Shown one piece after another: positions 1 to 48,842 of a stretch of 64,000 bases of DNA. Numbering within the stretch: the stretch's first letter is position 1; the number at the start of each line of letters is the position of its first letter. Source of the DNA: Lepidodermella squamata (taxonomy: Eukaryota > Animalia > Gastrotricha); contig JBLDXI010000066.1 of the NCBI GenBank assembly GCA_047495785.1, positions 310,001 to 374,000 on the forward strand, read 5' to 3'. Below the pieces are notes generated by a model, which had not been told where the DNA came from, made no database searches, and worked only from the letters and a program-made list of their open reading frames with translations. Made by a program: the position numbers and the translations under genes.

Positions 1-2157
1 GCGTTCCGCCTTCACCCTTTCATTTTACATAAAATCGCCATGCAATGGGCGCGGACGAGGGGTCGTGACAATCATCGGTTTCATCGCAGTTGTTTGCAGA
101 CACAATGCACGCGGTTATAGTGTTATATTCCGCCCAACAAATGACAACGATAAAAATCGCGGTCATTATATGGCTTATGAGCCCGATACTTGGTCGTTTT
201 TTGCTATTACCTCGAACAAAAACAGTGCCAACTGCTCGTTTTACTCTCAATCGATACACTACGAGACTGAACTACATAAGGGTAAATTATTCAACTCGAC
301 ACTACAGTGTGAAAAATAGTGGTATAATTACCCGGCTAAATAGCCTCCACTGTGCAAGGCATAGATATCACATTAACCAGAGAAGAAACTGATGCAGATA
401 AAATTCTGTAAAAATTCATCTCACATTTTCTTCATTAAGGTGGAATTTTAATAATATTTGCCCTCTTCGAGCTTATGGGAAAAGGTACAATTTAGTCATC
501 AGGTTTTTCTCGAATTCATGATGAAAAGGAATACTATAGAATTCCTCGTCTCGTGAACAACACACCGCAAAAAACCGCATGCTCAAATCAGCTTCCCTAT
601 TTGTCAGGCTCTATCCCGAGAAAATTGCTAAATGGACCAACTTTTTATTAAAAGATTTATACATGGATTTTTCGTATTTCGGCAGGGCTCGATTGCATGT
701 TGTTCAGTGAGTTACCGTCAAGTTCCCCAGGCGTGTCAATCGACTACGTTTCGATAGAAATGGGTGCTGGCATCGACTATGAATGGGTCAGCAAGGATTT
801 CAAATCAGTTATTGAAGAGACAACGATGTATGGAGATCTAACAAGCCAGTACGCCTGTTTCTATTTCTACGACGCCGATTTGGGCCCCGATGAACTCTTT
901 AGCCTCAGCAATGCTTGCCGTCGGGTCCCGCAGCAACCAATATTTTCAAATGGAAACTCGATCGCCGAGCTAATGGTTCCGTTCTTCGAGAGCGAGCGAT
1001 TCGACTACATCGACAACATGTCCTCTATACAGCGTAACTGCGGCCACTTCAACGTCTCGGTAAACGCGCCGCGGAACTATGAAAATCTATCGAATTACGA
1101 CGCCCCTCTGAAAATCAAAGTTGGTTTCGAGATAACAGGCTTGAATGAAATTGATACGGTTAGTGAAATCATAACTGTAAACGCACTGCTGCTGCTCTAC
1201 TGGCGAGTAAATACTTGCCCATGGCCGTGTTCACCCGCCATTTCAACTGGCAGAGAATTCGAGAACGTTTACATAGACAATCTCGATAATTTATGGCGTC
1301 CGAGAATTCGCTTTCTAAGCGCGGCTAATTCCAACGTTCAGATGAGGAACATGATAATCAATGACGATTACTTAATGATGATGTCTACTACATTTGGCTC
1401 AAAATTTAACAGAACTTTCGACTTTTACTGGCAAAAGGAAGGTTTGTTCGAGGCAAACTGTGAACTTTCGCTTCAGCTGTTCCCGTTCGACACTCAAATT
1501 TGCGATTTCGAATTCTCACTCGAAAAGAGCCTCAACATTGTTCAAGTGGATGATGAACATCTCATGTTCGATTTCAAGCCTTCTCACACAGGAGGCAGTT
1601 GGACTCTTGTTTCTACCGATAACTCGACCGGCCAGATTTTCTACAAGGGATATAATGTGTCAACATTCAAATTTACGGTGAGAGTAGCAAGGAACCCTAG
1701 GTATTACGTCAGAAACTTTGCGATTCCGTCATCGACCCTCGCCTCTCTGAATTTGTTTCTTTTTCTAATGCCACCTGACGCACCGGATCGAGCTGCCTTT
1801 TCAGTCACTGTCCTATTGACCATGACCGTTATGCAAAGTGCGATTTTGAATGAAGTTCCGAAGAAGCCTTATGAAACTCTTCTCGGCAAGCTGGTTCAAA
1901 GTTTAACATGGTTTTGTATTGCAGCGACTACTTACAATCTAGTGATTTTATGGTTGGCTGCATCTTTCTTTGATCCACTGGTGTATTCGAGGCCTCATCC
2001 GCGGTTCATCGGTGAACATATTGGATTGGTTCGCGTTATTGATAGCTGCTTCGCCATTTTTAGCTTCTCTCTATTCTGCTTTGTTCACTATTGTGTCTTG
2101 CACGACCCAACCCTCGATCCTGGCATGCTATCGAAAGCATTTAATCTATTTGACTAG
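1..2157 (+). CDS. LamG-like x2 / Cys-loop ligand-gated ion channel fusion, paralog 1 (5'-truncated by window edge); exons <1..281, 686..2157
   Basis: Reading frame from base 2 gives RSAFTLSFYIKS...TWSFFAITS...YETELHK. Donor G|gtaaat at 282 and acceptor tttcggcag| at 685 are phase 1 and join in frame to ORF 697..2157 (K-G-L-D-C-M). Channel part has Cys-loop CELSLQLFPFDTQIC (C-x13-C) and four hydrophobic segments. Confidence 0.88.
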
Positions 2158-2291
2158 CTTCTCGAGCTATGTCCATCCTGTACGATCGATGTAATCTTGA
2201 AATAAAATCTCCAATCCTCCCAATTATCGGGTAGGCGGGCAGAAATGGTGCTATAAAATTTAGGAGAGAATTATAATGGATGTGGCAATTC

Positions 2292-3018
2292 GGACACAAA
2301 ATTGTGTGTCACGCAATGGCTATTCGATTACATTGTGTGTGTGCGTGACTGGCTACTCGAACACAAGCGGGCGTGAAGTGGTGTGTGCGCTGTGCGCGCA
2401 TTCGACTATTTGAACACATCATCCTAAGTCACCTGCTAATCACCGAAATCCGGATTTTAACAACTTTTTGTTAGTCCGGAAAATGCTAAAACTGCGAAAA
2501 TGCGAAATACCAGCATAACGGAAAAATACCCGGTCCAAAATTTGAGCGCGCTGTAGCATCAGCAATAAAGGCGATAAAGCAAAAAAGGCCGCTCTCTTTG
2601 ATTTTGGGTCTCGGCCATCGAGTCTGGCCGAAATTCCGATAAAAGGCTGCTGCGCGGCGTGATTGCAACTGATAATTAGCGATTTGATAGCTCGAATTCG
2701 AAGCTCGCCGGACGTCAGCTTTCGGTTTTATTTCAATTTGACTTGTCTTAAAAGCGCGCGGCGAGGTGAGGATACCATTGGAGGCGCGGGCGGTGAGGAT
2801 AGGTTTAAAATCAAGAATACACGACACTAGCAGGGATAGTCTTTGGGATTATGCTAAAAACGCTAAATCCGTCTTAAATCCGGTCAATTACCGTCTTATC
2901 GACTTCGAGGGGTGTGTTCGAATAGCCGTTTCCGCGCACACACCGCTGTGTTCAAATAGCGAAAAGCGCGCACACAATGTGTTCGAATAGCCATTGCGTG
3001 ACACACATTTTGCTGTCC
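2292..3018. mobile_element. Non-autonomous TIR element (MITE-like)
   Basis: Imperfect terminal inverted repeats of about 36 bp (GGACAC/AGCAAAAT(T)GTGTGTCACGCAATGGCTATTCGA) with several subterminal GCTATTCGAACAC-like copies on each side. AATTATAATGG occurs at 2269 and 3019. No credible ORF. Confidence 0.7.
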
Positions 3019-3810: not shown

Positions 3811-4026
3811 CCTGTAATGCAAAGTGCAATTTTGAATGAGGTTCCGAAGAAGCCTAATAAAACTCTTCTGGACAAGCTGGTTCAGAGTTTGACATGGTTT
3901 TGCATCGCAGTGACAATCTACAATCTCACAATTCTATGGGTCGCAGCTTCTTACTTTGATCCAAATGTCCCATCGCGAGATTACGTGAGTTTTTTTAACA
4001 AGATAATCGGTTTTATTTGTTCATAA
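3811..4026 (+). pseudogene. Orphan fragment of the channel M2-M3 region
   Basis: MQSAILNEVPKKP..LVQSLTWFCIAVTIYNLTILWVAASYFDPNVPSR matches the paralogs, with no upstream extracellular domain and no M4. Confidence 0.85.
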
Positions 4027-4271: not shown

Positions 4272-4359
4272 AATCGACCCACCCAGCTGGTCGGAGATAC
4301 GAATCCGCGTTTTGAAATTCAATTCTCGTATTCCTATGTTAAAGATTCACGTACTGCCC

Positions 4360-7353
4360 ATGCACTGTTATCTGATGGTGAGTTGTTTGGTTGCGTGTAC
4401 CAACGGCTTGGATGTTTCGGAGATAAAGCTACCTCGCTTGGACCAACTCATCGCCTTTTGGCCCATGGATGCATACTCTGGTCTAACCGGCTTCACGAAA
4501 AATAACGAAGAGTTGCAACCATTACCATCAAATAGCACTTCAAAGTTTAGTAGCAATCATGTCACAAATTCTGGGTATTACACGCTGACGAGCGGGGACA
4601 GAATTGCTTCGTACTCTTTACCCGAAATTCCGAGTTCCTTCACAATTTGTGTTCACACTGGCCTCAACTACGGCTTCGGGGCAATAGAATTCGTCGGATT
4701 ATTTATGATGCAGCAATACAGCCTTTCACTGAGAACAGGACCGGAAAGTTGGCATCTAGCCGGTAATGATTTGGATGATTACGATGCCTTTTATTCGACG
4801 GATAGCAACATGAAGGCATTCACCTACGATGAGTCATCGGGCACAGTAAATTTCTATGTACCAAGAACTACTGCTGATCAGGGCTGGCAAATTGAAAACT
4901 ACACCATCCCGAGTAAGCTTTACTACAACAGCGAAATTCGGCCAGAATTTGTCATTGGACAGCGGAAAGAATCCACGGCTGACTACCCGATGTTCAAAGT
5001 ATCATGTGTTTTATTGTACGCAACCGCCTTAACAGCGGATGAGGTGAAATCGCTGTTTCTAACACCGTGCCGTAATGCAGTTAAAGCATCGATTGGTGAA
5101 ATCGATCAAATCAATATGGCGGTCATCCCACGACTTGAGAATCTCATCGGGTTCTGGCCTATGTCGTACGACTCGAATTTGCTCGGTTGGGATGGGGCTG
5201 GTAACGTAATTTTACCCCGCCAACCTAGCTCTTATGCGGTGAAACGGATCAAATTCGAAGGGCCGTATGGGCAAGGCAGTTATGCGGAGAATTCGAGTCT
5301 GTCGAGTCAATTTTTTTTAGTAGCCTACGACCACTTGCGTAGGCCGCGTTCCGCCTTCACCCTGGCATTCTATATCAAATCGACGTGCGACGAGGCAAAC
5401 GGAATTGTGACAATCCACGGTTTTCTAACAGTTAAATGTCTTGCTGATATTAACGGCATAGACGTCTCGTTTACTCCGTTGACGTCCAGAGGTCATGAGC
5501 AGGCAAATGGCACGTTAATGCGCTATGAGCACAGCGGAACATGGACGTTTTTCGCCATTACTTCAAACAGCGGCGCCTCTCACTGTTCAGTTTACACACT
5601 AGCTGTGAACTTTGATAGTCAACTTGCAGTTAACGGTAAGGCAACCACTTTGCTGTTGAAGCTCCATTCTATGTTTTACGTGGGTTTATACGCCTAAAAT
5701 GCGAGAATTCACATTTTAAGAGCAATCCCTTTTGAGCGCCATCCCATGGGTACATTGAAACACGGGGAATCTCTTGAGCCTTGAGCTTGTCCATGTCAAT
5801 TGCGCGACCGGACCGCAATAGCAAAAATGAAAGTTTGCAAGCCTAGTGAATAGGCCTAAAAAAGAGACCAGGGATGAAGGATCAGTATTATGATCAGTAA
5901 GGAATAATCATCTTTTTTCAACTTAGATGAGTGCCTGGACTTCGCGAAATATTTTATGACACCGGTCTCAGACGTTTCAATGGATTACGTTACAATGGAA
6001 ATTGGAGACGGTGCCGAATGGCCAAACAAGATCTCTGATACTCAGTTCGCTTGCTTCTATTTCTACGACTCAGCCTTGCGAGCTGATGAGATTTTCAATC
6101 TTAGCAACGCCTGCGGTCGACTCTTATCTCAGCAAACAACTTTCTCTAGTGGCAACTCGATTGCCGAGCGAATGGTTCCGTTCTTCGAGAGCCAGCAATT
6201 CGACTATATCGACAACATGACCTCGATACAGCGAAACTGTGGTCATTTCAACGCTTCAGTCAATGCGCCGCGAAATTTTGAAAATGCATCGAATTACGAC
6301 GCCCCGCTTAAGGTCAAAGTTGGATTCCAAGTGACTGGCCTGAATGAAATCGATACAGTTCGGGAAATTATAACTGTGAAAGCATTGATGGTGCTCTATT
6401 GGCGGGTAAATACATGCCCATGGCTGTCTTCGCCCACTCTACCAACGGGCAGAAATTTTGAGACCGTATACATCGACAATCTCGGCAATCTGTGGAGGCC
6501 CAGGGTCCGCTTTCTCTCCGCAGCTAATTCTAACATTCAGATGCGTAACATGCCTATCAATGACGATTATTTGATGATGATGTCGTCCAAAGTACCCACT
6601 GTCAATAGAACGTTTGACTTCTATTGGCAGAAGGAAGGTTTGTTTGTGGCGAAATGCGAACTCTCACTGGAATTGTTCCCATTCGATACACAAACGTGCA
6701 ATTTCGAATTCTCTCTCGAACGTAGCATCAACGTTGTTCGAGTCGATGACAAAACACTTATGTTAGATTTCAAACCTTCTCATTCTGGAGATAGTTGGAC
6801 CCTAGTTTCGACCGATAACTCGACCGGCCAAATTTTCTACAAGGGATATAATGTGTCAACATTCAAATTTACGGTGAGAGTAGCCAGGAATCCGAGGTAT
6901 TACGTCAGAAACTTTGCGATTCCTTCATCGACCCTCGCCTCCTTGAATTTGTTCATATTCATGATGCCACCTGATTTACCAGATCGGGCTGCTTTTTCTG
7001 TCACTGTTCTCTTGACAATGGCTATTATGCAGAGTGCGATTTTAAATGAAGTCCCGAAAAAACCTTATGTTACTCTCATCGGCGAGCTGAGCGTGAGTTT
7101 GTTGTGGTTTTGTATTGGAGTGACGATTTACAATCTATCGATTTTATGGTTGGCTGCATCTTTCTTTGATCCTAATGCAAGACGGAGGCCTCAGCCGCGC
7201 TTCATCAAGGGCCAAATCGGGTTGGTTCGAGTTATCGATAGCGGCTGCGCCATTTGCGGTATTTTCCTATTCTTTTTCGTACACTTGAGTATTTTGCGCA
7301 CGCCGGATCTCGATGCCGATTTGCTTTACAAATCATTTAATCTGTTTGAATAG
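4360..7353 (+). CDS. LamG-like x2 / Cys-loop channel fusion, paralog 2 (about 900 aa); exons 4360..5635, 5927..7353
   Basis: Signal-peptide-like MHCYLMVSCLVACTNG (alternative ATG at 4336). Repeats LIAFWPMD...SSFTICVH...AFTYD...FVIG...VSCVLLYATALTADEVKSLF and LIGFWPMS...SAFTLAFYIKS...TWTFFAITS. Phase-1 intron gtaagg..acttag (5636..5926) joins in frame. Spliced length 2703 nt. Cys-loop CELSLELFPFDTQTC. Confidence 0.9.
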
Positions 7354-7788: not shown

Positions 7789-10700
7789 ATGCACTGTTAT
7801 CTCATGTTGAGCTGTTTGGTTGCATGTACCAACGGCTTGGACGTTTCAGAGTTGGTGCTACCTCGTTTGGACCAACTATTGGTCTTTTGGCCCATGGACG
7901 CATACTCGGGGCTCATTGGTTTCACGAGAACAAACGAAGAGTTGCAACCGCTGCCGACAAACACTACGCCCAAATTCCTGCTGAATAACGTGGTGAATAC
8001 GGGATATTACGAAAGAACAAAGACCGCCACTAGAATCGCGGGCTATACTATACCCGAAATACCAAATTCCTTCACAGTTTCGGTACACACTGGTTCGAAT
8101 TTAGGCACGATCGAATTCGATGGCTTATTCAAGCTGTTTGAAGCTGGCATGTCTTTGAGAACAGGCGCTAACAGTTGGTACCATGTCGGAAATAAATCCG
8201 ATGCAGATGATGGAACTAAAGTTGAAGGAGACGGTAATTTTGCAGCTTTCACGTATCGCAAGTCGTCAAACGTGGTTGTATTTCACTGGATTAAATCAAC
8301 GGATCAGATTTTGCATAGCAAACGCTACATTGTTCCAGCGAAATTATACAGCAGCGAAACTAGGCGACAATTCGTAATCGGGAACCCTGAAGACCCCCAG
8401 AATTTCAAAGTCTCATGTGTCACTTTATACAAGGCTGCTCTAACTGCAGAGGAGGTGAAATCGTTGTTTCTAAAGCCGTGCCTAAACGCGGCGAAAGAAA
8501 GCATGGGTGAAATTGATGGAATCGATATGTCAAACATTCCTCGGCGGGAGAATCTCATTGGGTTTTGGCCGCTGTCGTACGATTCGAAATTAATCGGCTG
8601 GGACGGAGCAGGTAACCCCATTTTACCACGCCAGCCTAGCTCTTATAACGTGAAGCAAACACAATTTGAGGGGCCATATGGGCAGGGTAGCGTTTCGTGG
8701 AATGACACAGACTGGAGTTCTGCAAACGGCGGACTGGTTGCCTACGACTTCCTGCCGAGGCCGCGTTCGGCTTTCACCCTCGCGTTCTACATAAAATCGT
8801 CATGCTATGGGCGTGGACGAGGGTTCGTCACAGTCATCGATTTCATCACAGTTGTTTGCAGTCGTCAATTTGCAGAGGAAATCGAATTCGTATTCCGATC
8901 GACAGGAAGGAATCGAAGTGAACGTAAGGATTATAAACCCGAAACCTGGTGGTTTGTTGCTATCACCTCGAGCCAAGACAAAGTCAACTGCACGATTTAC
9001 GTTCAACCGATGCACTACGAGACTGAACTAAAACCGGGTAAATTATTCAACTCACTCTTTCGGAATCAGCGAGAAATAAATGCCGCATTTAGGCGCAATT
9101 TTCTCTATGATTCCTAACAGCTAATTCGCCAAATTGTTAACCAAAGAAGGAGGAATATACACCTTTTTTCCTTTTGCATTTTCATCTTGTTCCAACAAAA
9201 GTCTGAAATTTGTTCCAACAAATCTCAGAACTCATAAGCAGAAGCGATGTAAGCCAAGCGCCTGTTTTTTTTCAGGCGATTCTCTTTCTTCATTTTTTTA
9301 TCCTGTGGCTATCATAGCTTGTTAAAATTGTTTTTAACAAAATGAAAGGCAAAAGAAAATAGAAGTAGGTATTAATGATTGATTACAAGATTTTTGGGCA
9401 CCCTGTGATTTGTGTGACCCTGTGGTTTTTTTGGGGTTTTTTCACTTTGGCCTGCCGAACTGGGGTGTACGATATCACTCCTTCTCGCGTATTACCTCCG
9501 TACTTCGCGCCCTGGATCCCAGGTATCCCAACATTCCAACTGGGACTTCAGATGTTATCTATCGTCTTGGCAGAAATTCAAACCTTCAATTACAGCACCA
9601 GATTATAAAAAAACATTTGTGCTTCGGATTGTAGGAAATTCGAAACTATTTTGAGAAAAAAATCCGAGAAAAATACCAGAAACCCCGTACTGTAGCGTTT
9701 GGGAGCCCAGAGAGAATCACTGCATGGACTAAGTTGTTCATTGAAAAAAGTAACATAGAATTTTCGTATTCCGTCAGGGCTCGATGCGTGCGTGATGTTC
9801 AGTGAATTCGCGTCAAGTGCGCAAGGTGTCTTCATGGATTATGTTTCGATAGAAATCGGTGTTGGCTTCAGCTATGAATCGGTTAACAATGGTTTGGATC
9901 AGGTTATGGAGGAAAGAACGATTGATGGAGATCTAACAAGTCAGTACGCCTGTTTCTACTTCTACAACGCCGCTTTGGGCCCCGACGAACTCTTAAATCT
10001 CAGCAACGCTTGCCGCCGAGTTGTCGCACAGCAACCAATCTTTTCAAATAGCAACTCGATCGCCGAGCAAATGGTTCCGTTCTTCGAGAGCCAGCAATTC
10101 GACTTTATCGATAGCATGACCTCGATACAGCGAAACTGTGGTCATTTCAACGCCTCGGTGAACGCGCCGCGAAATTTCGAAAATCTATCGAATTACGACG
10201 CCCCCCTAAAAGTCAAAGTTGGTTTCGAGATAACAGAATTGAATGAAATTGATACGGTTAGTGAGATCATAACTGTGAACGCACTGATGGTGCTCTACTG
10301 GCGAGTGAATACTTGCCCATGGTGGTCTTCACCTGCCATTTCAACTGGCAGAAATTTCGAGAACGTCTACATAGACAATCTCGATAATTTATGGCGTCCG
10401 AAAATTCGTTTTCTAACCGCGGCTAATTCCAACTTTCAGATGAGGAACATGATTATCAATGACGATTACTTGATGATGATGTCTACTACATTCGGCTCAA
10501 CATTTAACCGAACTTTTGACTTTTACTGGCAGAAGGAAGGCTTGTTCGAGGCGAACTGCGAACTTTCGCTTCAGCTATTCCCGTTCGACACTCAAATTTG
10601 CGATTTGGAATTCTCACTCGAAAAAAGCATCAACATTGTTCAAGTGGATGATGAAAATCTGATGTTCGATTTCAAGCCTTCTCACTCAGGAGACAGTTGG

Positions 10701-11255
10701 ACCCTGCTTTCGACTGATAACTATACCGGCCAAGTTTTCTACAAGGGATTTAATGTTTCAACATTCAAATTTACGGTGAGGGTAGCCAGGAACCCTAGTT
10801 ATTACGTCGGAAACTTCGCAATTCCTTCTTCGACCCTCGCCTCTCTGAATTTGTTTCTGGTTCTAATGCCACCTGACGCACCGGATCGAGCTGCCTTTTC
10901 AGTTACCGTTCTTCTAACCATGACCGTTATGCAAAGTGCGATTCTGAACCAAGTCCCGAAAAAGCCTTATGAAACTCTTCTCGGCAAGCTGGGTCAGAAT
11001 TTGACGTGGTTTTGTATTGGAGTTACGATTTACAATCTCTCAATTTTATGGCTGGCTGCATCTTTCTTTGATCCGCTGGTGTATTCGAGGCCTCAGCCAC
11101 GTTTTATCAACGGACATGTAGGATTGGTTCGAGTTATTGACAGCTGTTTCGTCATTTTCGGCATTTCCCTATTTCTTCTTGTACACTTTCGTGTTTTCCA
11201 AAACCCAAATCTAAACACTAGCCTTGTTTTCAGAGAATTCAATCTATTCGATTAG
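7789..11255 (+). CDS. LamG-like x2 / Cys-loop channel fusion, paralog 3 (about 908 aa); exons 7789..9037, 9778..11255
   Basis: Phase-1 intron gtaaat..ccgtcag (9038..9777) is in frame; spliced length 2727 nt; same domain motifs as paralog 2. Confidence 0.9.
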
Positions 11256-11265
11256 CTTCACATTA

Positions 11266-15000: not shown

Positions 15001-15187
15001 GAACGTCCCTTCGCGACCTCATCTGCGTTTTTTCAACGGGAGAATCGGCTTGGTTCGCATGATTGATTTTTATGCATTACTTTTAGGTAGCTGCTTATTT
15101 TTGTTTGTTCATTTTCACGTTCTCCGAAACAAGCATCTGGACTATGATTTAGTTTTGAAATTATTCAGTCTTATTGATGAGTGGTAG
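12048..15187 (+). CDS. LamG-like x2 / Cys-loop channel fusion, paralog 4 (about 919 aa); exons 12048..13353, 13734..15187
   Basis: Signal-peptide-like MRCGLILIVSTSVLC. Phase-1 intron gtaatt..ttgttcag (13354..13733) is in frame; spliced length 2760 nt. AATAAA near 15232. Confidence 0.9.
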
Positions 15188-32600: not shown

Positions 32601-34403
32601 CGTTTTGATTTTCTACTCTTGAATACTACAAGCAGCCCTCAATCTAATGATCCCCTACATCGGATGGAGGCAATTTTCAACAGGGATCAACTCATTTTTT
32701 TTAAAATTTCAAAAATGTACTGGACGAGCCAAACACGGCAGACGAATGGCATTTTTGCCCAAAATAACAATTTATAGCGCTTTTCGTCGAATTTCAGAAA
32801 ATTATCCATTAGTGAACATAGGATGTGCTTAGTATCGATAGTATCGATAGAGGGCCGCTTCTAGTAATCTGATGAGCAGAAAATCAAAACTTTTGAGATG
32901 GTTGGCCATAGCTAAGAAATAACAGGTGTGATTCCTCTTTTGAACGAATGCTGTCTCGATTGCATGGAGGAATGCTTGGCGTTCAGCAATTATTTCCCGC
33001 GGATGGTCGCTAACGTCTCACTGGACTATCTTTCAATGGAAATAGGCATCGGCTATGAGAACGATACATGGCTACAGACTGGAGGAGACAGAGCCGAACA
33101 ATTCGCTTGTTTCTACTTCTACAATGACGCTTTGGACCACGAAGAAATCTGTAATCTCAGCAACGCTTGCGGTCGACTTGTCTCGATGGAAACTACGTAT
33201 TTGAGTGGAAACTCGATCGCAGAGCAAATGGTTCCGTTCTTTGAGAGCCAGAAATACGAATATATCGACTACATGTCTTCGATACAGCGAAATTGTGGCG
33301 ATTTCAACGCTTCAATAAAAGCTCCCCGAAACTTTGAGAACCCACCAAATGCCCCCCTAAGAATTCAAGTAGGCTTTCAAATCACTGGCCTGAACGAAAT
33401 TGACACGGTGAATGAGATCATATCAGTGAAGGCGCTAATGGTGCTCCATTGGGAAGTAGACACGTGCCCATGGCGGTCATCACCCTCCCTGCCGACTGGT
33501 ACGAACTTCGAGCCCGTCTACATTGACAATCTAAACAACTTATGGCTACCAAAGATCCGTTTTTTATCCGCAGCCAATTCAAACCTTCAGATGCGAAACA
33601 TGATGATCAATGACGACTATTTGATGATGATGTCTTCAAAGGTGCCTGCAAGCAATCGAATTTTTTACTTTTACTGGCAAAAGGAAGGTCTGTTCGATGC
33701 GAACTGCGAACTCTCGCTGCAATTGTTCCCATTCGATACACAAACTTGCAGCTTCGAATTCTCCTTCGAGCAAGGAGACAAAATTGTTCGAGTTGATGAA
33801 GAAACGCTTCTATTCGATTTCAACCATACCCATGTAGGCGACAGCTGGACCTTAGTCTCAACCGAGAATTCCACAGGCCAAGTTTTTTACAAGGGCTACT
33901 ACGTTTCCACTTTCAAATTCACGGTTAAACTCGCTAGGAATCCTCGGTACTACATCAAGAACTTTGCAATCCCTTCCTCGACCCTAGCCTCCCTGAATTT
34001 GTTTCTGTTTCTAATGCCACCCGATTTACCAGATCGGGCTGCTTTCTCTCTCACTGTTCTTTTGACGATGACCGTCATGCAGGGTGCAATTTTGAATGAA
34101 GTTCCGAGAAAATCTTATGACACCCTTCTCGGCAAGCTGGTTCAGAGCCTGACTTGGTTTTGTATCGCATCCGCTATATACAGCCTGCTTATTTTATGGT
34201 TGGCGGCTTCTTATTTTGATCCCAACGTTCCATCGCGACCTCAAAAGCGATTTTTCAATGGGAGATTTGGTTTGATTCGTGTTATTGACTGTTACTTTTT
34301 CTTTGGCGGCGTTTCAGTATTTGTTTTTGTTCACGTTTATATTATCCAAGATGCAAATTTGAGCTACGATTCTGTTGTGAGATCTTTCAATGTAGTAGCC
34401 TAG
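29607..34403 (+). CDS. LamG-like x2 / Cys-loop channel fusion, paralog 6 (about 915 aa), three exons: 29607..30694, 32218..32399, about 32926..34403
   Basis: Extra phase-2 intron AA|gtgagg..atgtcag|G (30695..32217) restores ...PGHK-ALYYSPIAD..SMTNF..GTWLFIAIT. Phase-1 donor G|gtaaac at 32400. The only in-phase AG seen in the open frame is aacag at 32925, so the last acceptor is less certain. Spliced length 2748 nt. Confidence 0.82.
31345..31845. mobile_element. pogo/Tigger-like MITE (501 bp) in intron
   Basis: Perfect 24-bp TIR CAGTAGTTTTGCGTTAAGCCGGAC, TA on both sides, many internal TAAGCCGGAC(T) repeats. Confidence 0.9.
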
Positions 34404-36411: not shown

Positions 36412-39400
36412 ATGCATTGTTCTCTTATTCTGGTGATAAGCTGTTTGGTTGCGTGTAGTACTGGCTTGGATGTTTCCAAGCTTGAACTGCCACGCTTGGA
36501 CCAACTCATCGCGTTCTGGCCGATGGACGGACATTCTGGACTTACTGGATACACGAGAACAGGCGAAGAGATTCAACCCCTGCCGAACAACAGCACGGCA
36601 AAATTTGCTCGGAACGAAGTCGTAAATACCGGATACTACGGCGGGGCTGGCAGAAGAGAAATCGCTTACTTGGTTCCCGAAGTTCCGAGTTCATTCACGG
36701 TTTCGGTGCATACCCATAAAAGTTTCGGTACGATAGAATTTGATGGCTTATTCAAGATGTTTACTGCTGGTGTTTCATTGAGAACTGGGGCTAACAGTTG
36801 GTATCTTGCAGGAAATGCTTCTTACAATGGATCTGACGATTCAAGTAATGCGGCATTCGTAGATGGATTGTTTGTGGCTTTCGCGTATCGCCAGCTGTCT
36901 AACGAGGCTGTGTTCTATCGAATGAGGACAAATGATCAGAGGTTATATAGTGGCATTTACACAGTGCCGCATAAACTCTACGTCGAAGACACTCGCCGAG
37001 AATTCGCTATCGGGAAACTAGAATCCCGGAGTATACTCAAGGTTTCGTGTGTCACCTTGTACAAAACTGCTCTAACTGCAGACGAGGTGAAATCGTTGTT
37101 TCTTAAACCGTGTCTCAGTGCTGCGAAAGCAAAGATGGGCAAAATCGATGCTATCGATATGACAGGCATTCCTCGACGAGAGAATCTCATTGGATTTTGG
37201 CCGATGTCCTACAATTCGAAGTTTATCGGCTGGGACGGGGCCGGTAACCCCATCTTACCGCGCCAGCCAAGCTCTTATAACGCGATGCAGATAGAATTTG
37301 AGGGGCCCTATGGGCAAGGTAGTGTTTCATCAGACGGGACATCTTTCTTTGGCGGGCTGGTTGCCTACGACTTCCTGCCGAGGCCGCAATCGGGCTTCAC
37401 CCTTTCGTTCTACATAAAATCGTCTTGTGATGGCGGTGGGAGAGGAATCGTCACGATCATCGGTTTCCTCACAGTTTATTGCCGCGATGAACCAGATAAA
37501 CCGGAATATAAGTGAGGAATTAATTAGAAGGGAGGTTCTATTTATAAGAAAGTGTTGCATGGCGATAGAAGTAACTAGGGAGTACCTATTTTATGGATAG
37601 GGTCTGACAAAATTGGTGACCTCATCGCACAAATACTAATTCCCGAACAAAAATTTTCAGGGTTATTTTGATATTTTTTAACTAGTTTTCATTCCGGGGT
37701 TCTTACATATTAATTTGAAATTACCAGATAAACTCCGAAATAGTGAGAAACCTTAATATCGAAAAAACCCTTATTTATTATGCTCTGAAAAACCCCGAAT
37801 TATTGCGGAAACTATGGGAGTATTCCTGTCACCCACGACTCCAACTATAATCCGATCGAGCTGTCGCCATATGTGTGAAATGGCGGCTATTCGAGCGGAT
37901 TATATTTGGAGTCGTGGGTGACAGGAATATTCCCATAGTTTCCGCAATAATTGAGATTGAGTAAGTACAATAATAAGGCGCCTGGCGTTAACAGAAAAAT
38001 AATTCATACAAACAGCACGCAGATAAATGGCATTTCACAGAAAATTGGTGAGTATTTTTAGTGCATTCAAATTATGGTATTCAAGTCTATTTATGTATTC
38101 CAGTTCATGTAGAAGTAAAAGTTAAGGATGGCCGAATATCGTTCCGTAGGTTTTCGGGTTTCATCGTCGAAACTCACGTCAAGCCATCAACAAATTTCTA
38201 AATTAGAGATAAAAATTATTAAAATAATTTTGAGAATTATGGTCACTTTTACACGAGCAACTTCGTACTTTGTAATCATCCATGTTGAATGACTTCGACT
38301 GTTACGTGATAATTTTTACTAAAATTTACTAAATTTAATTTTTTACTAAAAGATGAACGATTCACCGAAACTATTCTTATAATATTTTAGGTTCCGAGGG
38401 TACCTATACATAGAACAGTGAGTCAAATATTTTCTTAAAAAACCCAAGTTTCATACGTAAAACTAATCTAGAATAGGGGTGATTAGTGGCATGCTTGCCG
38501 CCATTCTAAGTGAACGGTGAAATTTAAGAAAAATTTAGGAAAAAATTTGGTTCAATAGCAGCCCAGGGTTGAGAGGTCAAGTCGGTTGATAAACATCATA
38601 AAAGAATGATTCGCTGACAAATAATTGCTTGACTTAATAATGATAATTTCAAGCTAGAAATAGTAGTAGCCCAGGCTGCTATAGGAACAGATGATACTGT
38701 ATAATGGGAAGCAGTTCAATCGCTGACTGGGAAAAGATGCTCTGGCATTGAAAATGAGGGTGAATTCCAAGTGCTAATAAGATTGCAAAATTGCAAAGTG
38801 TTTTGTTCATTTCTTAAACTAGTTCAGAGACACCGTGACGCAACAATGGTGACTCGACTTGACAGAAAAGTTCAGAAAAACCCCAAGTACATACTCGATT
38901 TCGCGTTTTAATAAATCGGAGTTTTTTCGTTATGTATGTGTCGTAGGCGATGGTGAAATATTGGCCAATAACACATTAGAGTACTCTATCATGACAAGTG
39001 AAAAGTGGGGTTTGGTGAAATCTTTCACATCGTGAGATTTTGCAGCCGCTCTAAGAATTTGATGGAATCAAGGTAATGCTTGCACGTCAGTCGAAATCGA
39101 TAAGCCGTTTCGGCGACACTTTGGGATCTCCGGTCTTTGAGAATTGAGAAGGATGGGAGCCTCCTATAGAGGTCTTATTTCTTTTTTGAATTCAAAATCT
39201 TCAAGTAAATCCAAGTAAGAAAATGTAGGAATCGTCCCACTTAAAGTCACACTACAGAACACACCACAGAAAATCGCAAACCCCCACTTATCACTTCTTA
39301 ACTGTCATTTCATTTAACTTACTTTTACAACTTCAACTTATTATGATTTTTTACTATTATTGCATTAGTATGCACTTCGTATTAGATGACACGATAGAAG

Positions 39401-41779
39401 GCAAAGAATACTTTCCGCATGTCAGTTGACGTTAAATTGCTGCATTTTTATTGCACCTGTATAGCCTGTTGTTCAAGTACTTGAACATTTGGATATGGAT
39501 CGGACAATTTTTTTCGACCGCATTAACTTATACCGCCTGACGTCACATAAACAAGCCTAGAGGTTCCTTCTGCCGCGTTGTCAACGATATCCTATGATCG
39601 TAGAGCACCGTGCAATATCAGCCAATGAAATAAGAAGAAAAGCCTCAACTCCATTGACTGATCATTGGCTGATATTGCACGATGCTCTGTGACATACGCC
39701 ATACCTATACGATATTATTTTATGACAGGGCGCTCCACTACCGTCCAATAGCCAATGGACAGTCAATGACTGATTTTCGGCGCGATGATTCTATTCAGAT
39801 TGAAATAGCTGGAAGTTGGCTATTTAACGCCATCACCTGGAGCGAAGATGCTCGCGAAATAATATACACACAAGCGGTGCATTACGATACAGGTCTAAGA
39901 TCAGCAGGTAAAGTGATTGAAATTGCTATGTCATGGTGATGTTTCGGGTGCTGCTATTGACACAAAGTTATGTGCCTATTTTCGGCCATTGACACGTGAA
40001 GCTGATAAATTTTCTACAGTGCGGTGTAAACTATGGAAGCGGCGATTTAAGATTCGGGAATAAGCTTACACAATTTCAAACAATGTCTTACAGTTTGTAC
40101 TTATCACCTCTCATCTTTAAACTGACGTAAATTCATCCGTAAACTGACGGTTGTTTGCGTCAGTTTGAAGATGAGGGGTGATACGTCAAAAACTGTAAAA
40201 CATTGTGGCCAAACCCACGTTATTGTCAATTTTGAGCAGGTTTTTTATCCTTTCACAGCGGGAAGGATATTTTCGGAATTTTGACTTTTGACAATTCACA
40301 GTAATTTTGATTTACTGATTACTGATACATTTTACTCAGAGCCTGTAGTCAGAGCGGCATTCAGCCATAATTTCCCGCGGATTGTCGCAAACGTCACACT
40401 GGACTATCTTTCAATGGAAATTGGCATGGGCTATGTGAACGAAACTTTGGCACTCGATGGGGACGAAACCACACAATTCGCTTGTTTCTACTTCTACAAT
40501 GCCGCTTTGAATAAAGATGAAATCTTAAACCTAAGCAACGCTTGCGGTCGACTAGCCTCGATGAAAACTACGTACTTGAGTGGAAACTCGATCGCAGAGC
40601 AAATGGTGCCGTTCTTTGAGAGCCAGCAATTTGAATCTATCGACAACCTGACATCGATACAGCGAAATTGTGGCAATTTCAACGCTTCTCTAAATGCACC
40701 TCGAAATTGTGAGAACCTGTCAAATTACGATGCTCCTCTAAAAATCAAAGTTCGCTTTCAGATCACTGGCTTGAATGAAATTGACACAGTGAGCGAAATT
40801 ATAACTGTGAAAGCCTTGATGGTGCTCTACTGGCGGGTGAATACATGTCCGTGGCTCTCATCGCCTGCCCTGCCAACTGGCAGGAATTTCGAAACAATCT
40901 ACATCGATAATCCCGACAATCTATGGAAGCCTAAAATCCGATTTATATCAGCAGCTAATTCGAATCTTCAGATGAGAAACATGGTCATCAATGACGATTA
41001 TTTGATGATGATGTCTTCGAAGGTGCCGACAATCAACAGAACCTTCGACTTTTACTGGCAGAAGGAAGGTCTGTTTGAGGCGAACTGTGAACTTTCTCTT
41101 CAGTTGTTTCCTTTCGATACTCAATCGTGCGAGTTCGAATTCTCACTCGAGCGTAGTATTAACATTGTTCGAGTGGATGACAGAACACGTTTGTTTGATT
41201 TTAACCACACCCATGTTGGCGACGGTTGGAGGCTGATCTCGACTGAAAATTCTACAGGCCAAGTTTTCTACAAGGGATTTTACGTTTCTACGTTCAAATT
41301 CACGGTCAAACTCGCTAGGAATCCTCGGTATTACATCAAAAACTTTGCAATCCCTTCGTCGACCCTTGCATCTCTGAATTTGTTTCTGTTTCTAATGCCA
41401 CCTGATTTACCAGATCGGGCTGCTTTCTCTGTCACTGTTCTTTTGACGATGACCGTCATGCAGGGTGCAATTTTGAATGAAGTTCCGAGAAAATCTTACG
41501 ACACCCTTCTCGGAAAGCTTGTTCAGAGCCAGACTTGGTATCGCATCCACTGTTTACAGCCTGCTTATTTTATGGTTGGAGGCTTCTTATTTTGATCCCA
41601 ACGTTCCATCGCGACCGCAAATGCGTTTTTTCAATGGAAGATTCGGTTTGATTCGTGTCATTGACTGTTACTTTTTCTTTGGCGGCGTTTCAGTATTTGT
41701 TTTTGTTCATGTTTACATTATTCAAGATGCGAATTTGGACTATGATTTTATTTTGAGATCTTTCAATATAGTTGCTTAG
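36412..41779 (+). pseudogene. LamG-like x2 / Cys-loop channel fusion, paralog 7, frameshifted in M3; exons 36412..37511, 39729..39907, about 40340..41779
   Basis: Same three-exon structure as paralog 6 (phase-2 intron 37512..39728, phase-1 donor at 39908; acceptor at 40339 or 40348, both in frame). A 5-nt deletion at about 41538 (TGGTATCGC vs TGGTTTTGTATCGC) shifts the frame; the rest of M3 and M4 are in ORF 41477..41779. Confidence 0.8.
37798..37952. repeat. Long palindrome (arms of about 73 bp, 9-nt loop) in intron
   Basis: AATTATTGCGGAAACTATGGGAGTATTCCTGTCACCCACGACTCCAA... pairs with ...TTGGAGTCGTGGGTGACAGGAATATTCCCATAGTTTCCGCAATAATT. Confidence 0.9.
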
Positions 41780-43291
41780 TGCTGTAATTGTTGAAATACT
41801 AGCCCGGGCTTCTAGATTTTCAATGTACAAAAAGGATGAAAAATTGGGCGTCTATTGCAGATGAATGGTGAACGGTGTGAACTTGTTGTCCTCAGCTAAA
41901 CTTGTTGGCTGAATTTACCGAATTAAAGCGGTGGAAAAAACAGCTAGAGCATATGAAGATAAACAAGTATAACAGGTGGAAGTGTTGTTGAGACGTAAAT
42001 AAAGACTTCTTTGGCGATGCAATTTCAGGTACTAACAATAAATGAGGGATGTAAACCGACACAAGCTGGATTTTTCGCGATGTCTTGAAGTAGAAGCAGG
42101 ACTAATCAGCTGAATGACTGCTTACTTTGGTTTCCTTCACCAGACTAATTAAAATTGGCTGGTGAATTGTTGCTTTTAAATTGCGTCGGAGGAAAAAGTC
42201 GCAAGCAAAAAAGCCGTAAATTTTCGAAATGTTAATGCATACTGATCTGAGAACTCGCTTGAATTGACTTGGAATTTGAAATTGCCCCCATTTGAAGCCT
42301 GACATCGGGAGGAATCTGTGGGTGAAACTCTATTTCTCCGATTCACTCCGTTATAAAATGGCCATAATCTTCTGTTCCTCCAGAATCTCGAAAGTGCTTA
42401 TGGTAGGCGCGTTCCGCTGATGTGCAATAACAGCTAAAGCAAATATCGGAAAAATCGACAGTATCGGATATGACAAACATTCCTCGTCGACAGAATCTCA
42501 TTGGATTTTGGCCACTATCGTATGATTCAAAGCTCATCGGCTGGGACGGCGCCGGGAACGCTATCTTACCTCGTCAAGAAAGCACTTATAACGCGAATCA
42601 AATAAAACCCGAAGGACCCTATGGGCAGGGTAGCATTTCATGTATGAGTACCTCCTGTGGGCTAGCTTACGATCACCTACTAAGGCCGACTCCAGCATTC
42701 ACCCTTTCGTTCTACATAAAATCGTCTTGTGATGGCGATGGGAGAGGGATCGTTACTATCATCAGTTTCCTCACCGTTATTTGCCGCTTTATTGAGAATG
42801 AAATAGCAATCTTCCAATAGCGAACGGAAAGTCGATGACTGATTTTGAGCAGAACGAAAATTGTAATCAAGGTAATATCCACGCTGGAACCTGGCTATTT
42901 GTGGCATTACCTCGGACGAAGACGAAGGCGATTCCAAATTACACACAAGCAATTTATTACCAGCACGAACCGTAGTTTGGTAAGTTTATCAAAATATTGG
43001 AGTCATAATCATTGCTTTGTTGAAACAATGGCAGTGCTATTGTTGAGCGTGACCTTAAGCTGTGCGCTTTTTCTTCGTTTTTTGATGTTCTCGTCTTTCC
43101 AGACTGTTAGCGCATTGGTTTCTGTAGTTGCCGGTTCACTTATGATTCATTGTGATTCATTGAATACTGTAAACGCAGCAGCTCCCTAGATTTAAATAAT
43201 TCAACAATGAATTCTTAGCCCACCCCAAACTGCGGTTCCAAACTGACTAGACTAGACTAGCAAGAACTTCCCGCCTAACGTCGTCGGTGTA

Positions 43292-46200: not shown

Positions 46201-47063
46201 TCTTGTTTCATTGTCAAAGTATTTACGTCTCCTAGTGAATTCACTCATTTGAGCCCCCATTTGACCGCTGAATTGTTTGCTAACATTGTAAATGTTCCGA
46301 ATATCCCGAAAAACTCCATTTATCGACAGAATGCATCCATAGCAGCAGCAAGTGAAAAACCGCGGTGACCCTCCAAAAAGTAACGGTAACTAAGTAGTAT
46401 TTACTCTGCTTTACAAGAAAACAATGAGAGACAGTGTTTTTGACGGGTGATTTGAAGGCATAGACCTCCTTGAAGATGGTGATAATGAGATCTATGCTCT
46501 GAAAGACCGGCTGGCTGTTAGGGCAGACGTGCTAAAAATAACCATCTTCCTACAAAAACGGCTGTGGTAATCTTGTAGAGAATACATTACTGTACTTAGA
46601 AACACTGTTTCCGCAAGGTATAACCGCACTTAGGTGAAAGTTTCCGGGGTTAAACGCTTAAGATCTGCGAAAAACGGCATAAAAATGGCTTGTTTAGGCT
46701 TAGCGCATACGTCTAATTGAGCCATATTTAGAAAAAATGACGCCGGCTGCCTTATTAAATGCTTGAAATGCTATCAGAAAAACACTAACAAAGGTGTCGT
46801 CACCGGTGATAAAATGCGGAATTACGGGGATGAAGTTGCGCGCCGGGGAACTTGCGGTGCGCGGAGCGGCTACAACGCGAAAACGCGCGGCATCGCGCAG
46901 CACGCTTTTCCGTAGCAACAAAATTTTTATTTAAAAAAAATTATTAATATAATAAAATAAAAATATTTTTAAAAGGATATTTAATTTTGTGCATAAAAAT
47001 TTGCGGTAGCACGCGATTTTCCAACGCGCGCGGCGGATGTTCGGTTTTAAAAAGAACACCCTG
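43292..47063. mobile_element. 3.77-kb Tc1/mariner-type TIR element without a recognisable transposase ORF
   Basis: Perfect 29-bp TIR CAGGGTGTTCTTTTTAAAACCGAACATCC; TA duplication at 43290-91 and 47064-65; removing it restores GGT GTA TCT ATG GAT TAT (GVSMDY). Confidence 0.95.
45400..46470. repeat. Three diverged tandem units of about 370 bp inside the TIR element
   Basis: GGTAACTAAG at 45644, 46016 and 46385 (periods 372 and 369), with co-repeating AAAACC(G/A)CG, TTTTCTG/TTTTCTTG and AGAAAAC(C/A)ATGAG. Confidence 0.8.
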
Positions 47064-48842
47064 TATCTATGGATTATCTTTCGGTGGAAATAGGCGTCGG
47101 CTACGCAAACGCTGAAGAATAAATGGTTAACTATGGTGCCACCACACAATTAGCATGTTTCTATTTCTATAACGCCGCATTGGGTCGCGATGAAGTTTTC
47201 AATCTAAGTAACGCGTGTGGCCGACTGATCTCCGAGCAGACTACTTTCTCGAGTGGAAATTCAATCGCAGAACAAATGATACCGGTATTCGGAACCCCGC
47301 AATTAAAGTACATCGACAACATTACAGCTATTCAGCGTAACTGTGGTGTATTCAACGCTTCAGTCTACGCTCCTCAGATCTTTGGAAACATATCGGACCC
47401 CGACGTTCCTCTAAAGGTGAGCATTGGCTTCCAAGTTACAGGCTTGAATGACATCGACACTGTGAGTGAAATCGTAACAGTTAAAGCGCTGATGGTCCTG
47501 AATTGGCGGGTAAATGCTTGCCCATGGTGGTCATCTCCTGCCCTACCAACTGGCAGGAATTTCGAGACCATCTACATTGACAATCTCAGTAATTTGTGGC
47601 TACCGAAGATCCGCTTCCTATCAGCAGCAAATTCGAATCTTCAGATGCGAGACATGATAATCAATGACGACTATTTGATGATGATGTCTTCAAAAGTGCC
47701 CACAATCAACCGTACTTTTGACTTTTATTGGCAGAAGGAAGGTTTGTTCGAGGCCTATTGCGAACTGGACCTTCAATTATTTCCATTCGATACACAAAAT
47801 TGCAGCTTCGAATTCTCCCTTGAGCGCGACATGAACACAGTTCGCGTTGATGGAGAAACCCTACGATTTTACTTCAAGCATTCGCATTCCGGCGATAGCT
47901 GGACCTTAGGTTCAACCGAGAATTCGACAGGCCAAGTTTTCTACAAAGGCTTCTACGTTTCAACATTCAAATTCACGGCGAAACTCGCGAGAAATCCGCG
48001 ATACTACATCAAAAATTTCGCCATCCCTGCGTCGACTCTCGCATCTCTGAATGTATTCCTGTTCATGATGCCACCTGATTTACCAGATCGGGCTGCTTTT
48101 TCTGCGACGGTCCTGCTAACCATGACGGAAATGCAGGGCGCTGTGGTGAATCAAGTTCCGAAAAAGCCATACACAACCCTTCTCGGCAAGCTGGTTCAGA
48201 GCTTGACTTGGTTTTGCGTCGCATCCACCATTTACAGCCTGCTGATCTTATGGCTGGCAACTTCTGCCTTCCATTCGGAGGCGAAGAAATCTTTTAAAAG
48301 GCGATTTTTCTCTGGACGCATTGGTTTGGTTGGCGCAATCGATTTCTGTTGTCTACTTTGCAGCGTTTTCCTATTCTTTTTCGTTCACATTCTAGTTTTG
48401 CAGAACAAGAATTTGGACTATGATTACGTCATTGGATCGTTCGATCTAATTGATTAATAGAGGATCAGGGTCAAACTTTCCAAAATAGAAACAATTATTC
48501 TTCAATTTTGTTAAATAGATAAAACTGTAAACGTGTCGTCATGAAAGGTGAACTTTCGTGAACGTGAAACTAGAACACGGCTTTGCTTTCCGTTAAAAAC
48601 TGACACATTTCTTGTTTATTATTACGCAACACCTTGAGAAAAATAAATAAATATTGTTGGCAAAATCTGCCTCCCTTTTATCATTCACGCCCAATATTTT
48701 TTCTATACGCAGTGTACTACAAATGATTTCTATGAATAAAATAGTTGTAACAGTGTAGCTCCGTGCGAAATTACCATTAATTTTTTGTTTATTTTTTGCT
48801 ACAGAAGATTTGTATGCAATTTATTCGAGATAAGGCTTGCCT

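Follow-up and report, generated by a model that had tools for sequence, protein, structure and literature searches.

The 64,000-nucleotide stretch of Lepidodermella squamata DNA analysed here (the window) raises the question of whether an animal Cys-loop channel can carry two lectin-like domains ahead of its ligand-binding domain within one polypeptide, as a sequence-only reading of the locus had proposed, and what such heads would do for the channel.

A tandem array of Cys-loop channel genes

Paralogs 1 to 8 and one orphan exon fragment, all on the forward strand, make up a lineage-specific tandem family in the window, whose genes encode subunits of Cys-loop (pentameric ligand-gated) channels. 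In paralogs 1 to 5, an exon 1 is followed by a channel exon, with GT..AG present at all five junctions (281/686, 5635/5927, 9037/9778, 13353/13734 and 16872/17382). Exon 1 is 3n+1 nucleotides long and the two frames are open once joined, which bears out the phase-1 splice originally read at these positions. The position of the intron is homologous among the copies, its exact boundary sliding by 1-5 residues.

Paralog 1 is truncated at its 5' side by the window edge. What remains of its exon 1 (2..281, repeat 2) is an open frame running into a GT donor at 282, in frame to 686, and its channel exon (686..2157, 67% identity to paralog 4 by tblastn) comprises the last strands of repeat 2, the linker, the ECD, the predicted helices M1-M4 and the stop. 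The orphan fragment, from the M3-M4 region of a channel exon, lies at 3814..4017 (tblastn with residues 809-876 of paralog 4, 76% identity). Paralog 2 has an exon 1 of 1276 nt encoding the signal peptide, repeat 1 and most of repeat 2 (4360..5635, phase 1, GTAAGG donor) and a channel exon at 5927..7353. Paralog 3 occupies 7789..9037 (exon 1, 1249 nt) and 9778..11255, paralog 4 occupies 12048..13353 (1306 nt) and 13734..15187, and paralog 5 occupies 15585..16872 (1288 nt) and 17382..18811, again in phase 1; the channel exons of paralogs 3 and 5 were placed by the in-frame GT-AG junction, tblastn and alignment. The joined frames of paralogs 2, 3, 4 and 5 are intact and encode 900, 908, 919 and 905 aa, respectively.

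The initial count of intact products in paralogs 1-7 was overstated, because paralog 6 needs an extra intron and paralog 7 has a 5-bp deletion; with paralog 1 cut by the window edge, the intact set comprises paralogs 2-5 and probably paralog 6. The best open model of paralog 6 has three exons and 894 aa: exon 1 at 29607..30694 (phase 2, ending at a GTGAGG donor), a middle exon encoding the middle of repeat 2 at 32218..32380 (tblastn with residues 374-430 of paralog 4; 3' boundary uncertain) and a channel exon at 32970..34403 (tblastn; 5' boundary uncertain), so that the bounds of the second intron are uncertain. Paralog 7 shares this additional intron, with exon 1 at 36412..37511 (the same GTGAGG donor), a middle exon at 39727..39888 (tblastn) and a channel exon at 40285..41779, whose frame is lost in M3, where 5 bp are deleted near 41540. 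The channel exons of paralogs 6 and 7 share 91% nucleotide identity, and the one gap between them, 5 nt long, is where the frame changes; paralog 7 is thus probably a recent pseudogene or an assembly error. Paralog 8 is a relic without repeat 1. Of repeat 2 it retains a remnant (42467..42963) that changes frame somewhere from 42784 to 42814, and the reading frame of its channel exon (47063..48457) is interrupted by a stop a little upstream of 47123.

Two exons, probably one protein

Each exon 1 could, alternatively, belong to a gene of its own, or transcripts could stop before the channel exon, so that no fusion protein would be made. Indeed, every exon-1 frame continues for 17-25 codons to a stop within the intron, and an intron-retaining transcript would thus encode a secreted protein; contigs assembled from DNA reads continue through the intron. 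Two separate genes would, however, leave repeat 2 truncated, since its last strands are encoded in the channel exon, and the channel without a signal peptide, since no signal-peptide-like start is found in the channel exons; both of these features had been recognized from the start. When aligned to P0002, P0003 and P0005, relatives that have a single such domain, the exon-1 part of repeat 2 and the part at the head of exon 2 lie end to end. A conserved pair of cysteines, about 20 residues apart, spans the junction with one member on each side, and the position and phase of the junction are constant in five paralogs. Moreover, in P0002, a distant relative from a metagenome (on L001), repeat 2 and the channel stand in the same domain order within one uninterrupted ORF of 702 aa. 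Residues 256-897 of paralog 4 align to it in a single HSP of 707 columns (26% identity, E 3e-63), colinear across the junction, and P0002 itself matches Neur_chan_LBD with E 1.4e-13. The split of repeat 2, the straddling Cys pair, the colinearity with P0002 and the low dN/dS values given below all support the splice. This leaves separate genes as a most improbable explanation, and the predicted product is very probably a fusion in which a signal peptide and two LamG-like domains, together a lectin-fold N-terminal region, precede a Cys-loop channel.

The LamG-like heads

Alignments of the two N-terminal repeats contain the motif series that had been listed for them: L-I-x-F-W-P, S-F-T, W-x-F-x-A-I-T, I-G and C-x-x-x-Y-x-x-A-L-x-x-x-E, and each repeat ends in a Cys. 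Repeat 1 of paralog 4 (12126-12788) was folded with AF2 as a unit (pLDDT 77.4, pTM 0.80). When this model was compared with the PDB, Foldseek returned 143 matches at E <= 1e-3, ConA-like lectin domains leading, and VIA-align superposed 190 of its 221 residues at 3.0 A, with a Z score of 16.2. Its neighbours in AFDB and the Atlas are LamG, Laminin_G_3, pentraxin and TSPN domains (TM up to 0.74; 0.70-0.74 against Laminin_G_3 clusters). Repeat 1 is therefore modelled as a two-sheet ConA-like/LamG jelly roll. AF2 on the whole of exon 1 gave no usable fold (pLDDT 43.6), and because of this failure the fold of repeat 2 and the geometry between heads and channel are only inferred: judged from the alignments, repeat 2 is a homologue of repeat 1, and its jelly roll is placed by homology only.

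At the level of sequence profiles, the assignment of the heads to the ConA-like/Laminin_G_3 group is fainter. Laminin_G_3 matches at E <= 1 occur in 3 of 12 repeat units, and no head exceeds the Pfam gathering score. The best, 20 bits where 27.6 are required, comes from repeat 2 of paralog 2 (E 8e-4); this match pairs residues 329-408 with positions 15-94 of the 151-position profile and stops at the end of the exon. It is repeat 2 that gives the weak Laminin_G_3 matches. Among the relatives, P0003 matches Laminin_G_3 with E 2.8e-4 and P0005 has a precomputed PF13385 match; weak sequence matches of the heads to neuronal pentraxin-1 and the ESM features concur with a lectin-type assignment. Only four sequence relatives of the head family were detectable (P0001, P0002, P0003 and P0005). 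As P0002 has exactly repeat 2 and the channel, these two parts are the conserved core and repeat 1 is an additional outer copy. Each protein has 11-14 N-x-S/T sequons, almost all in the outer part.

The channel core

Between the heads and the ECD lies a conserved linker, about 60 aa in length. Neur_chan_LBD (PF02931) is matched above its cut-off in paralogs 2 (E 1.8e-12) and 4 (E 8e-11), and the loop C-E-L-S-L-Q-L-F-P-F-D-x-Q-x-C (a C-x13-C loop with an F-P-F-D core) is invariant in all copies. A PDB sequence search with the channel returned 208 chains at E <= 0.01, including nAChR alpha7, nAChR alpha1 and 5-HT3A; for paralog 4, the best are the alpha7 and alpha1 subunits, with E about 1e-13. 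Hydrophobicity peaks mark M2, M3 and M4 in every copy, while M1 passes the threshold in paralog 3 only. M1-M3 align to nAChR, and PF02932 reaches 22-25 bits, short of its 28.1-bit cut-off (Neur_chan_memb E 2.4e-4 in paralog 2). The M3-M4 loop is only about 20 aa long.

Pocket and pore residues were read from the alignment to PDB matches. When aligned to alpha1 with HMMER, the query has no residue for the loop-B Trp149 of the nicotinic aromatic box, whose column is an insertion; its loop C is shortened by 4 residues and carries G-L in place of a Cys-Cys pair. The classical acetylcholine pocket thus appears to be degenerate. The pore carries Asp at -1', Leu at 9' and Pro at -2'. These are mixed signals for selectivity, Pro at -2' being an anion-channel habit and Asp at -1' a cation habit; from Asp -1' and Leu 9', the channel is probably cation-permeable.

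Selection on heads and channel

The dN/dS ratio is lowest in the ECD (0.09), followed by the TMD (0.16) and the linker (0.17), and highest in repeat 1 (0.25) and repeat 2 (0.32). The heads thus change at about three times the rate of the channel, with purifying selection acting on both. The heads of neighbouring paralogs differ by about 40%; their rapid evolution could reflect relaxed constraint rather than diversification of ligands. The frameshift in paralog 7, the relic that is paralog 8 and the orphan exon at 3814-4017 might suggest that the whole array is decaying, a recently expanded family turning into non-functional pseudogenes. Yet paralogs 2-5 have remained intact despite a mutual dS of about 1-1.4, with dN/dS between 0.09 and 0.32 in every domain, and we regard general decay as very unlikely.

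A possible role for the heads

The best explanation overall, and in our judgement a probable one, is a two-headed Cys-loop family whose heads may sense ligands. It is because the classical pocket seems degenerate that the heads are proposed as the ligand-capturing part. Five subunits would form one channel with ten lectin-fold domains outside; the fast-evolving heads would capture extracellular ligands, either glycans or proteins, and, once bound, would modulate or trigger gating via the conserved linker and the ECD. Such channels could act in chemosensation or pattern recognition, as has been proposed for the lobster pentaxin/lectin-LGIC receptors. The sensing mechanism as such is put forward tentatively, as less likely than not.

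Contacts with matrix and synaptic proteins are a common task of LamG and pentraxin domains, and neuronal pentraxins cluster AMPA receptors. The fusion could therefore be real and the heads serve as modules for anchoring, clustering or assembly, tied to the extracellular matrix or to partners, while a small ligand, pH or ions gate the channel via the ECD. That the ECD is the most conserved domain (dN/dS 0.09) is expected if it has kept a ligand site of its own, and the N-terminal domain of DeCLIC merely speeds gating and binds calcium (PMC12664993). A divergence of about 40% between neighbouring heads, however, exceeds what a shared scaffold contact would lead one to expect, and the canonical aromatic pocket looks degenerate; we consider this alternative rather unlikely. 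A bolder form of the ligand-sensing reading, in which binding of a macromolecule or glycan at the LamG heads, and not at the degenerate neurotransmitter pocket, opens the pore, and in which the heads are an add-on independent of both the crustacean pentaxin-LDLa fusions and DeCLIC, is less likely still. If it were true, appended sensor domains would be a recurrent route for pLGICs to new stimuli. In any event, with its compact two-exon genes, its several intact paralogs and no extensive intracellular loop, this family would be a convenient system for studying head-to-gate coupling and for asking whether lectin-headed Cys-loop channels sense glycans or proteins.

Comparison with known systems

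With nAChR alpha7 and alpha1 and with 5-HT3A, the family shares Neur_chan_LBD, the C-x13-C loop with F-P-F-D, the predicted M1-M4, a Leu at 9' and an acidic residue at -1', at an identity of about 20-25%. It differs from them in the missing loop-B Trp, the shorter loop C without Cys-Cys, a Lys in place of the Asp of WxPD and the short M3-M4 loop. Repeat 1 shares its predicted fold, including the C-terminal helix, with Laminin_G_3 and ConA-like jelly rolls (pentraxins, collagen TSPN domains, sialidase CBM40 and the N-terminal half of the clostridial neurotoxin binding domain), and the heads have in common with pentraxins a closing motif of the type x-W-x-x-x-L-T-x-x-E-V. They differ from these domains in a low identity (8-16%), in Pfam scores under threshold and in a family-specific Cys pair spanning the last strand and the C-terminal tail.

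As is predicted for the present family, the prokaryotic pLGIC DeCLIC has two beta-sandwich lobes per subunit before the ECD, ten per pentamer, and a short or absent intracellular domain. The parallel, first drawn from the sequence, does not extend to kinship. Each DeCLIC lobe is a small jelly roll of 8 strands and is related to the calcium-binding domains of Tk-SP protease and collagenase (PMC12664993), whereas the LamG domains here have about 220 aa and 12 or more strands (the lobes being compared by description); DeCLIC is bacterial and a Pro-loop channel, the present family a Cys-loop one. No DeCLIC chain was among the best 50 matches listed by Foldseek or VIA-align for the repeat 1 model. 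The resemblance is one of analogy, not homology.

Closer parallels come from arthropods. The American lobster genome paper (Polinski et al. 2021, Sci Adv; PMC8221624) described 66 Cys-loop receptors to which pentaxin, C-type lectin and LDLa domains are joined, proposed a neuro-immune sensor role for them and stated that the chimeric class is confined to the lobster and its crustacean relatives; no structural or functional follow-up was found in the literature searched. The ESM Atlas holds large arthropod clusters combining Neur_chan_LBD with Ldl_recept_a and Pentaxin or Lectin_C. By ESM features, the channel part studied here lies nearest to compact arthropod and nematode clusters, and the structural neighbours of those clusters include these fusions. 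Lectin-headed animal Cys-loop channels as such are thus not new. The view that extra N-terminal domains are mainly prokaryotic agrees with structural work, which states that they are absent from eukaryotic pLGICs (PMC9897478), but not with the lobster fusions or the arthropod clusters. The lobster receptors and the present family are both animal Cys-loop subunits with extra N-terminal lectin-type domains, pentaxin and LamG both belonging to the ConA-like superfamily, and are also alike in having expanded greatly within a lineage, in their compact channel core and in the sensor or immune role proposed for them. Neither exon 1 nor exon 2, however, has a Pfam match at E <= 1 to Pentaxin (PF00354), LDLa (PF00057) or C-type lectin (CLECT); the family has instead two tandem Laminin_G_3-like domains and no LDLa, an architecture that is a variant distinct from the lobster form and almost without sequence relatives. 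The restriction of chimeric receptors to crustaceans therefore needs to be re-examined, since a differently built family occurs in L. squamata, as a second eukaryotic case of N-terminal accessory domains that structural work on pLGICs has treated as purely prokaryotic.

Layout of the channel gene array

The ORF list, the stop-to-stop frames and a tblastn map together reveal eight copies of one gene type at positions 1-48457, all on the + strand. In its intact form, the gene encodes a signal peptide, two LamG-like repeats (the head), a linker, an extracellular domain (ECD) and a transmembrane domain (TMD, M1 to M4). Paralog 1 is truncated at the window edge, and the products of paralogs 2, 3, 4 and 5 (p2 to p5) are 900, 908, 919 and 905 aa long, respectively. 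The sequence-only reading had proposed a two-exon, phase-1 structure for paralogs 1-7. For paralogs 1-5 its junctions proved exact, each with a GT donor, an AG acceptor and joined frames that are open. These introns measure 291-740 nt, and the lengths of exon 1 in p2 to p5 (1276, 1249, 1306 and 1288 nt) are all of the form 3n+1, therefore phase 1. The same structure fails for paralog 6, which requires an additional intron within repeat 2 (three exons encoding 894 aa in the best open model, with uncertain bounds for the second intron), and for paralog 7, which has the gene structure of paralog 6, to which its DNA is 91% identical, and whose M3 has lost 5 bp near 41540, which shifts the frame. 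Paralog 8 is without repeat 1; its frame changes at 42784/42814, and an in-frame stop precedes 47123.

Between paralogs 1 and 2, tblastn detects an orphan fragment of the channel exon (M3-M4; 3814-4017, + strand) that is 76% identical to p4. The array is broken between paralogs 5 and 6 by a multi-exon RING-finger and ankyrin-repeat gene (22745-29087, + strand), a second copy of which comes after paralog 8 (49087-55597, + strand). A 170-aa open frame without a Pfam match lies between paralogs 6 and 7 (34954-35463, + strand); its tail presumably resembles the C-terminus of a LINE ORF2. Further downstream are two intron-free glycosyltransferase genes of the A4GALT type, in tandem on the + strand (59587-60705 and 61125-62177; Gly_transf_sug, E ~2e-17), with a DXD sugar-binding region. 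Rfam gave no match anywhere in the window.

Splicing of the head to the channel

Exon 1 encodes the signal peptide, repeat 1 and most of repeat 2, and the channel exon the rest. The splicing of the two into one product is supported by four independent points read from the sequence: the intron cuts a folded unit, a cysteine pair spans the junction, the channel exon is without a signal peptide, and a relative is colinear in a single ORF. As had been noticed from the sequence, repeat 2 is split by the intron. Indeed, in A6, a 23-row alignment of repeats and relatives, the exon-1 part of repeat 2 and the opening 65-78 residues of the channel exon lie one directly after the other along P0002, P0003 and P0005, three metagenomic relatives with a single domain of the head family; the Laminin_G_3 match of p2 in Pfam ends at profile position 94/151, ~17 residues short of the exon end. 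The junction is flanked in p2-p5 by a conserved Cys pair, ~20 residues apart, with one Cys on each side. The topology of Cys-loop subunits requires a signal peptide, and the channel exons were found, as first read, to have no signal-peptide-like start. Finally, residues 256-897 of spliced p4 align to the P0002 ORF in a single HSP of 707 columns (26% identity, E 3e-63), which crosses the p4 junction at aa 435/436. The sole sequencing run retrieved, X1, is of DNA; its depth is flat at ~52 and its contigs are continuous through the 5635-5927 intron.

Sequence and fold of the head

The motif series described in the sequence-only reading is common to repeats 1 and 2, and a Cys closes each of them. 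In p2-p5, a conserved pair of Cys, spaced by 20-21 residues and extending from the last strand to the C-terminal tail, stands at the end of each repeat; P0001-P0005 have this pair too. Homology between the two repeats is accepted mainly because of the common motif series and alignment A6, hhalign giving a local match over the first 29 columns only, at 81% probability. The sequence evidence for a Laminin_G_3-type family is weak but consistent: E-values are 8e-4 for p2 repeat 2, 2.8e-4 for P0003 and 1.6e-4 for the best of 12 units, P0005 has a precomputed PF13385 match, and 79 of 100 neighbours of the head in ESM features are Laminin_G_3 clusters. Among PDB sequences, the profile covering the head with both its repeats matched none and the repeat profile matched only two, neuronal pentraxin-1 (E 0.1) and the lectin domain of the NanA sialidase (E 0.16), both ConA-like and both aligned via the closing L-T-x-x-E-V motif.

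A model of the whole exon 1 reached a pLDDT of 43.6 and was left out of fold searches. Repeat 1 of p4 alone, modelled with A6, gave a pLDDT of 77.4 and a pTM of 0.80; the model shows twelve strands and a helix at the C-terminus. Foldseek returned 143 PDB matches to this model at E <= 1e-3, headed by clostridial neurotoxin binding domains (their lectin-like N-terminal half), trans-sialidase lectin domains and the NanA CBM40, and VIA-align superposed 190 of 221 residues at 3.0 A (Z 16.2). Further matches came from Swiss-Prot models (collagen TSPN domains, pentraxins and ADGRD1) and from the AFDB clusters and Atlas (LamG/Laminin_G_3 proteins, with TM up to 0.74). By these matches the predicted structure of repeat 1 is a ConA-like/LamG jelly roll, which is an assignment of fold and not of function. 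Repeat 2 is assigned to the same fold by homology only.

Relatives of the head

Within the databases searched, the head family is very rare. When the head profile was run exhaustively with HMMER against 1.84 billion representatives, 3 proteins matched, and the repeat profile contributed one further protein. A word-indexed protein search found no match for the head or the channel, which excludes close relatives in that collection only, and with the repeat profile it returned P0003 and P0005 only; two scans of JGI metagenomes gave no match. All these relatives trace to one or two metagenome projects and to a eukaryote that is compact and poor in introns; their contigs have no DNA in common with the window.

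P0002, recovered by the exhaustive HMMER search, is encoded without interruption by a 702-aa ORF at 7197-9305 of L001, a eukaryotic contig from a metagenome whose sister contig (L002) carries a LINE reverse transcriptase. Its signal peptide is followed by a single LamG-like domain, then by a stalk rich in Pro and Thr, and last by a Cys-loop channel (Neur_chan_LBD, E 1.4e-13). The LamG-like domain of P0002 aligns to repeat 2, which makes repeat 2 together with the channel the conserved core and repeat 1 an outer addition. P0001, a single ORF of 1036 aa in the related metagenome eukaryote (contig L003, 7045-10155), has four tandem LamG-like repeats, a hydrophobic C-terminal tail and no channel, which shows that the LamG-like domain of the head family exists outside channel fusions too. 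P0003 and P0005 have one repeat each.

Two uncharacterised animal proteins in the AFDB clusters carry a LamG fold, A0A6P5A5G1 (927 aa) at 264-469 and A0A1S3JMC7 (610 aa) at 21-243. Their size and domain position would fit a LamG plus channel layout; from the ranges of their LOC numbers, we take them to be possibly amphioxus and Lingula proteins.

The channel

The channel exons match Neur_chan_LBD in Pfam (E 1.8e-12 and 8e-11), with a Neur_chan_memb match below threshold. Among solved structures, nAChR alpha7 and alpha1 are closest in sequence (HMMER, PDB; E ~1e-13); other nAChR subunits and 5-HT3A come next, and this is the cation-channel branch. The C-x13-C loop and its F-P-F-D are the same in all copies. 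As read off the HMMER alignment to nAChR alpha1, the nicotinic pocket of the array channels is degenerate: the column of the loop-B Trp is absent, and loop C retains both Tyr but is four residues shorter and without the Cys-Cys pair. In the same alignment, a Lys stands where WxPD has Asp. M2 carries P(-2'), D(-1'), R(0'), Thr 6', Leu 9' and Val 13'; the acidic -1' suggests a cation-permeable channel, which the Pro at -2' renders uncertain. The M3-M4 loop is ~20 residues long. Hydrophobic peaks mark M2, M3 and M4 in every copy, and M1 exceeds the threshold in p3 only. Almost all of the 11-14 N-x-S/T sequons of each protein fall in its outer part, in agreement with the expected topology. An additional conserved Cys is found in the linker of p2-p5 (R-N-C) and may pair with the ECD Cys of T-C-P-W.

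In ESM features, the array channel is closest to compact Neur_chan_LBD clusters of 354-389 aa from arthropods and nematodes (score 0.95, 216/256 features). At 57289-58473 (+ strand), the window itself holds an intron-free gene for a compact Cys-loop channel of 394 aa (Neur_chan_LBD, E 2.6e-11), which has a signal peptide of its own and bears no lectin domains at the N-terminus. It shares ~24% identity with the array channels, and the head-less ancestor may have been similar to it.

Selection and possible mode of action

Among p2-p6, where dS is ~1-1.4, pairwise dN/dS is 0.25 for repeat 1, 0.32 for repeat 2, 0.17 for the linker, 0.09 for the ECD and 0.16 for the TMD. All parts of the array proteins are under purifying selection, with the heads changing faster, and these values agree with a coding function in both exons.

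Beyond the architecture shown for the array proteins, we propose that pentamers would bear ten outer lectin-fold domains, that the heads would bind extracellular glycans or proteins, and that ligand-bound heads could influence gating via the linker. The linker is well conserved, with 72% identity at its dN/dS of 0.17. The main rival explanation is that the heads merely anchor or cluster the channel.

Comparison with known systems

According to structural work on DeCLIC, eukaryotic pLGICs do not carry N-terminal domains (PMC9897478). The prokaryotic channel DeCLIC itself has a two-lobe N-terminal domain. Each lobe is a jelly roll of 8 strands, of the Tk-SP/collagenase calcium-binding type (PMC12664993); homology with the heads was rejected since the type of jelly roll differs, so that the lobes are analogous to the heads, not homologous.

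Closer in general design are 66 predicted Cys-loop receptors of the American lobster bearing CLECT, pentaxin and LDLa domains (PMC8221624). They are expressed in brain and antennules, were proposed to be neuro-immune pattern-recognition channels and were said to occur only in the lobster and in crustaceans related to it (PMC8221624). In the ESM Atlas, arthropod clusters of 679, 88, 55 and 57 members combine, by automatic labels, Neur_chan_LBD, Ldl_recept_a and Pentaxin, and one of 63 members, labelled likewise, has Lectin_C in place of Pentaxin. Both the general idea and a related architecture have thus already appeared in print. In the literature searched, no paper joins LamG or concanavalin-like domains to Cys-loop channels. 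In contrast to the lobster and arthropod fusions, the array proteins, which have no Pfam match to LDLa, Pentaxin or Lectin_C at E <= 1, bear two Laminin_G_3-like domains instead.
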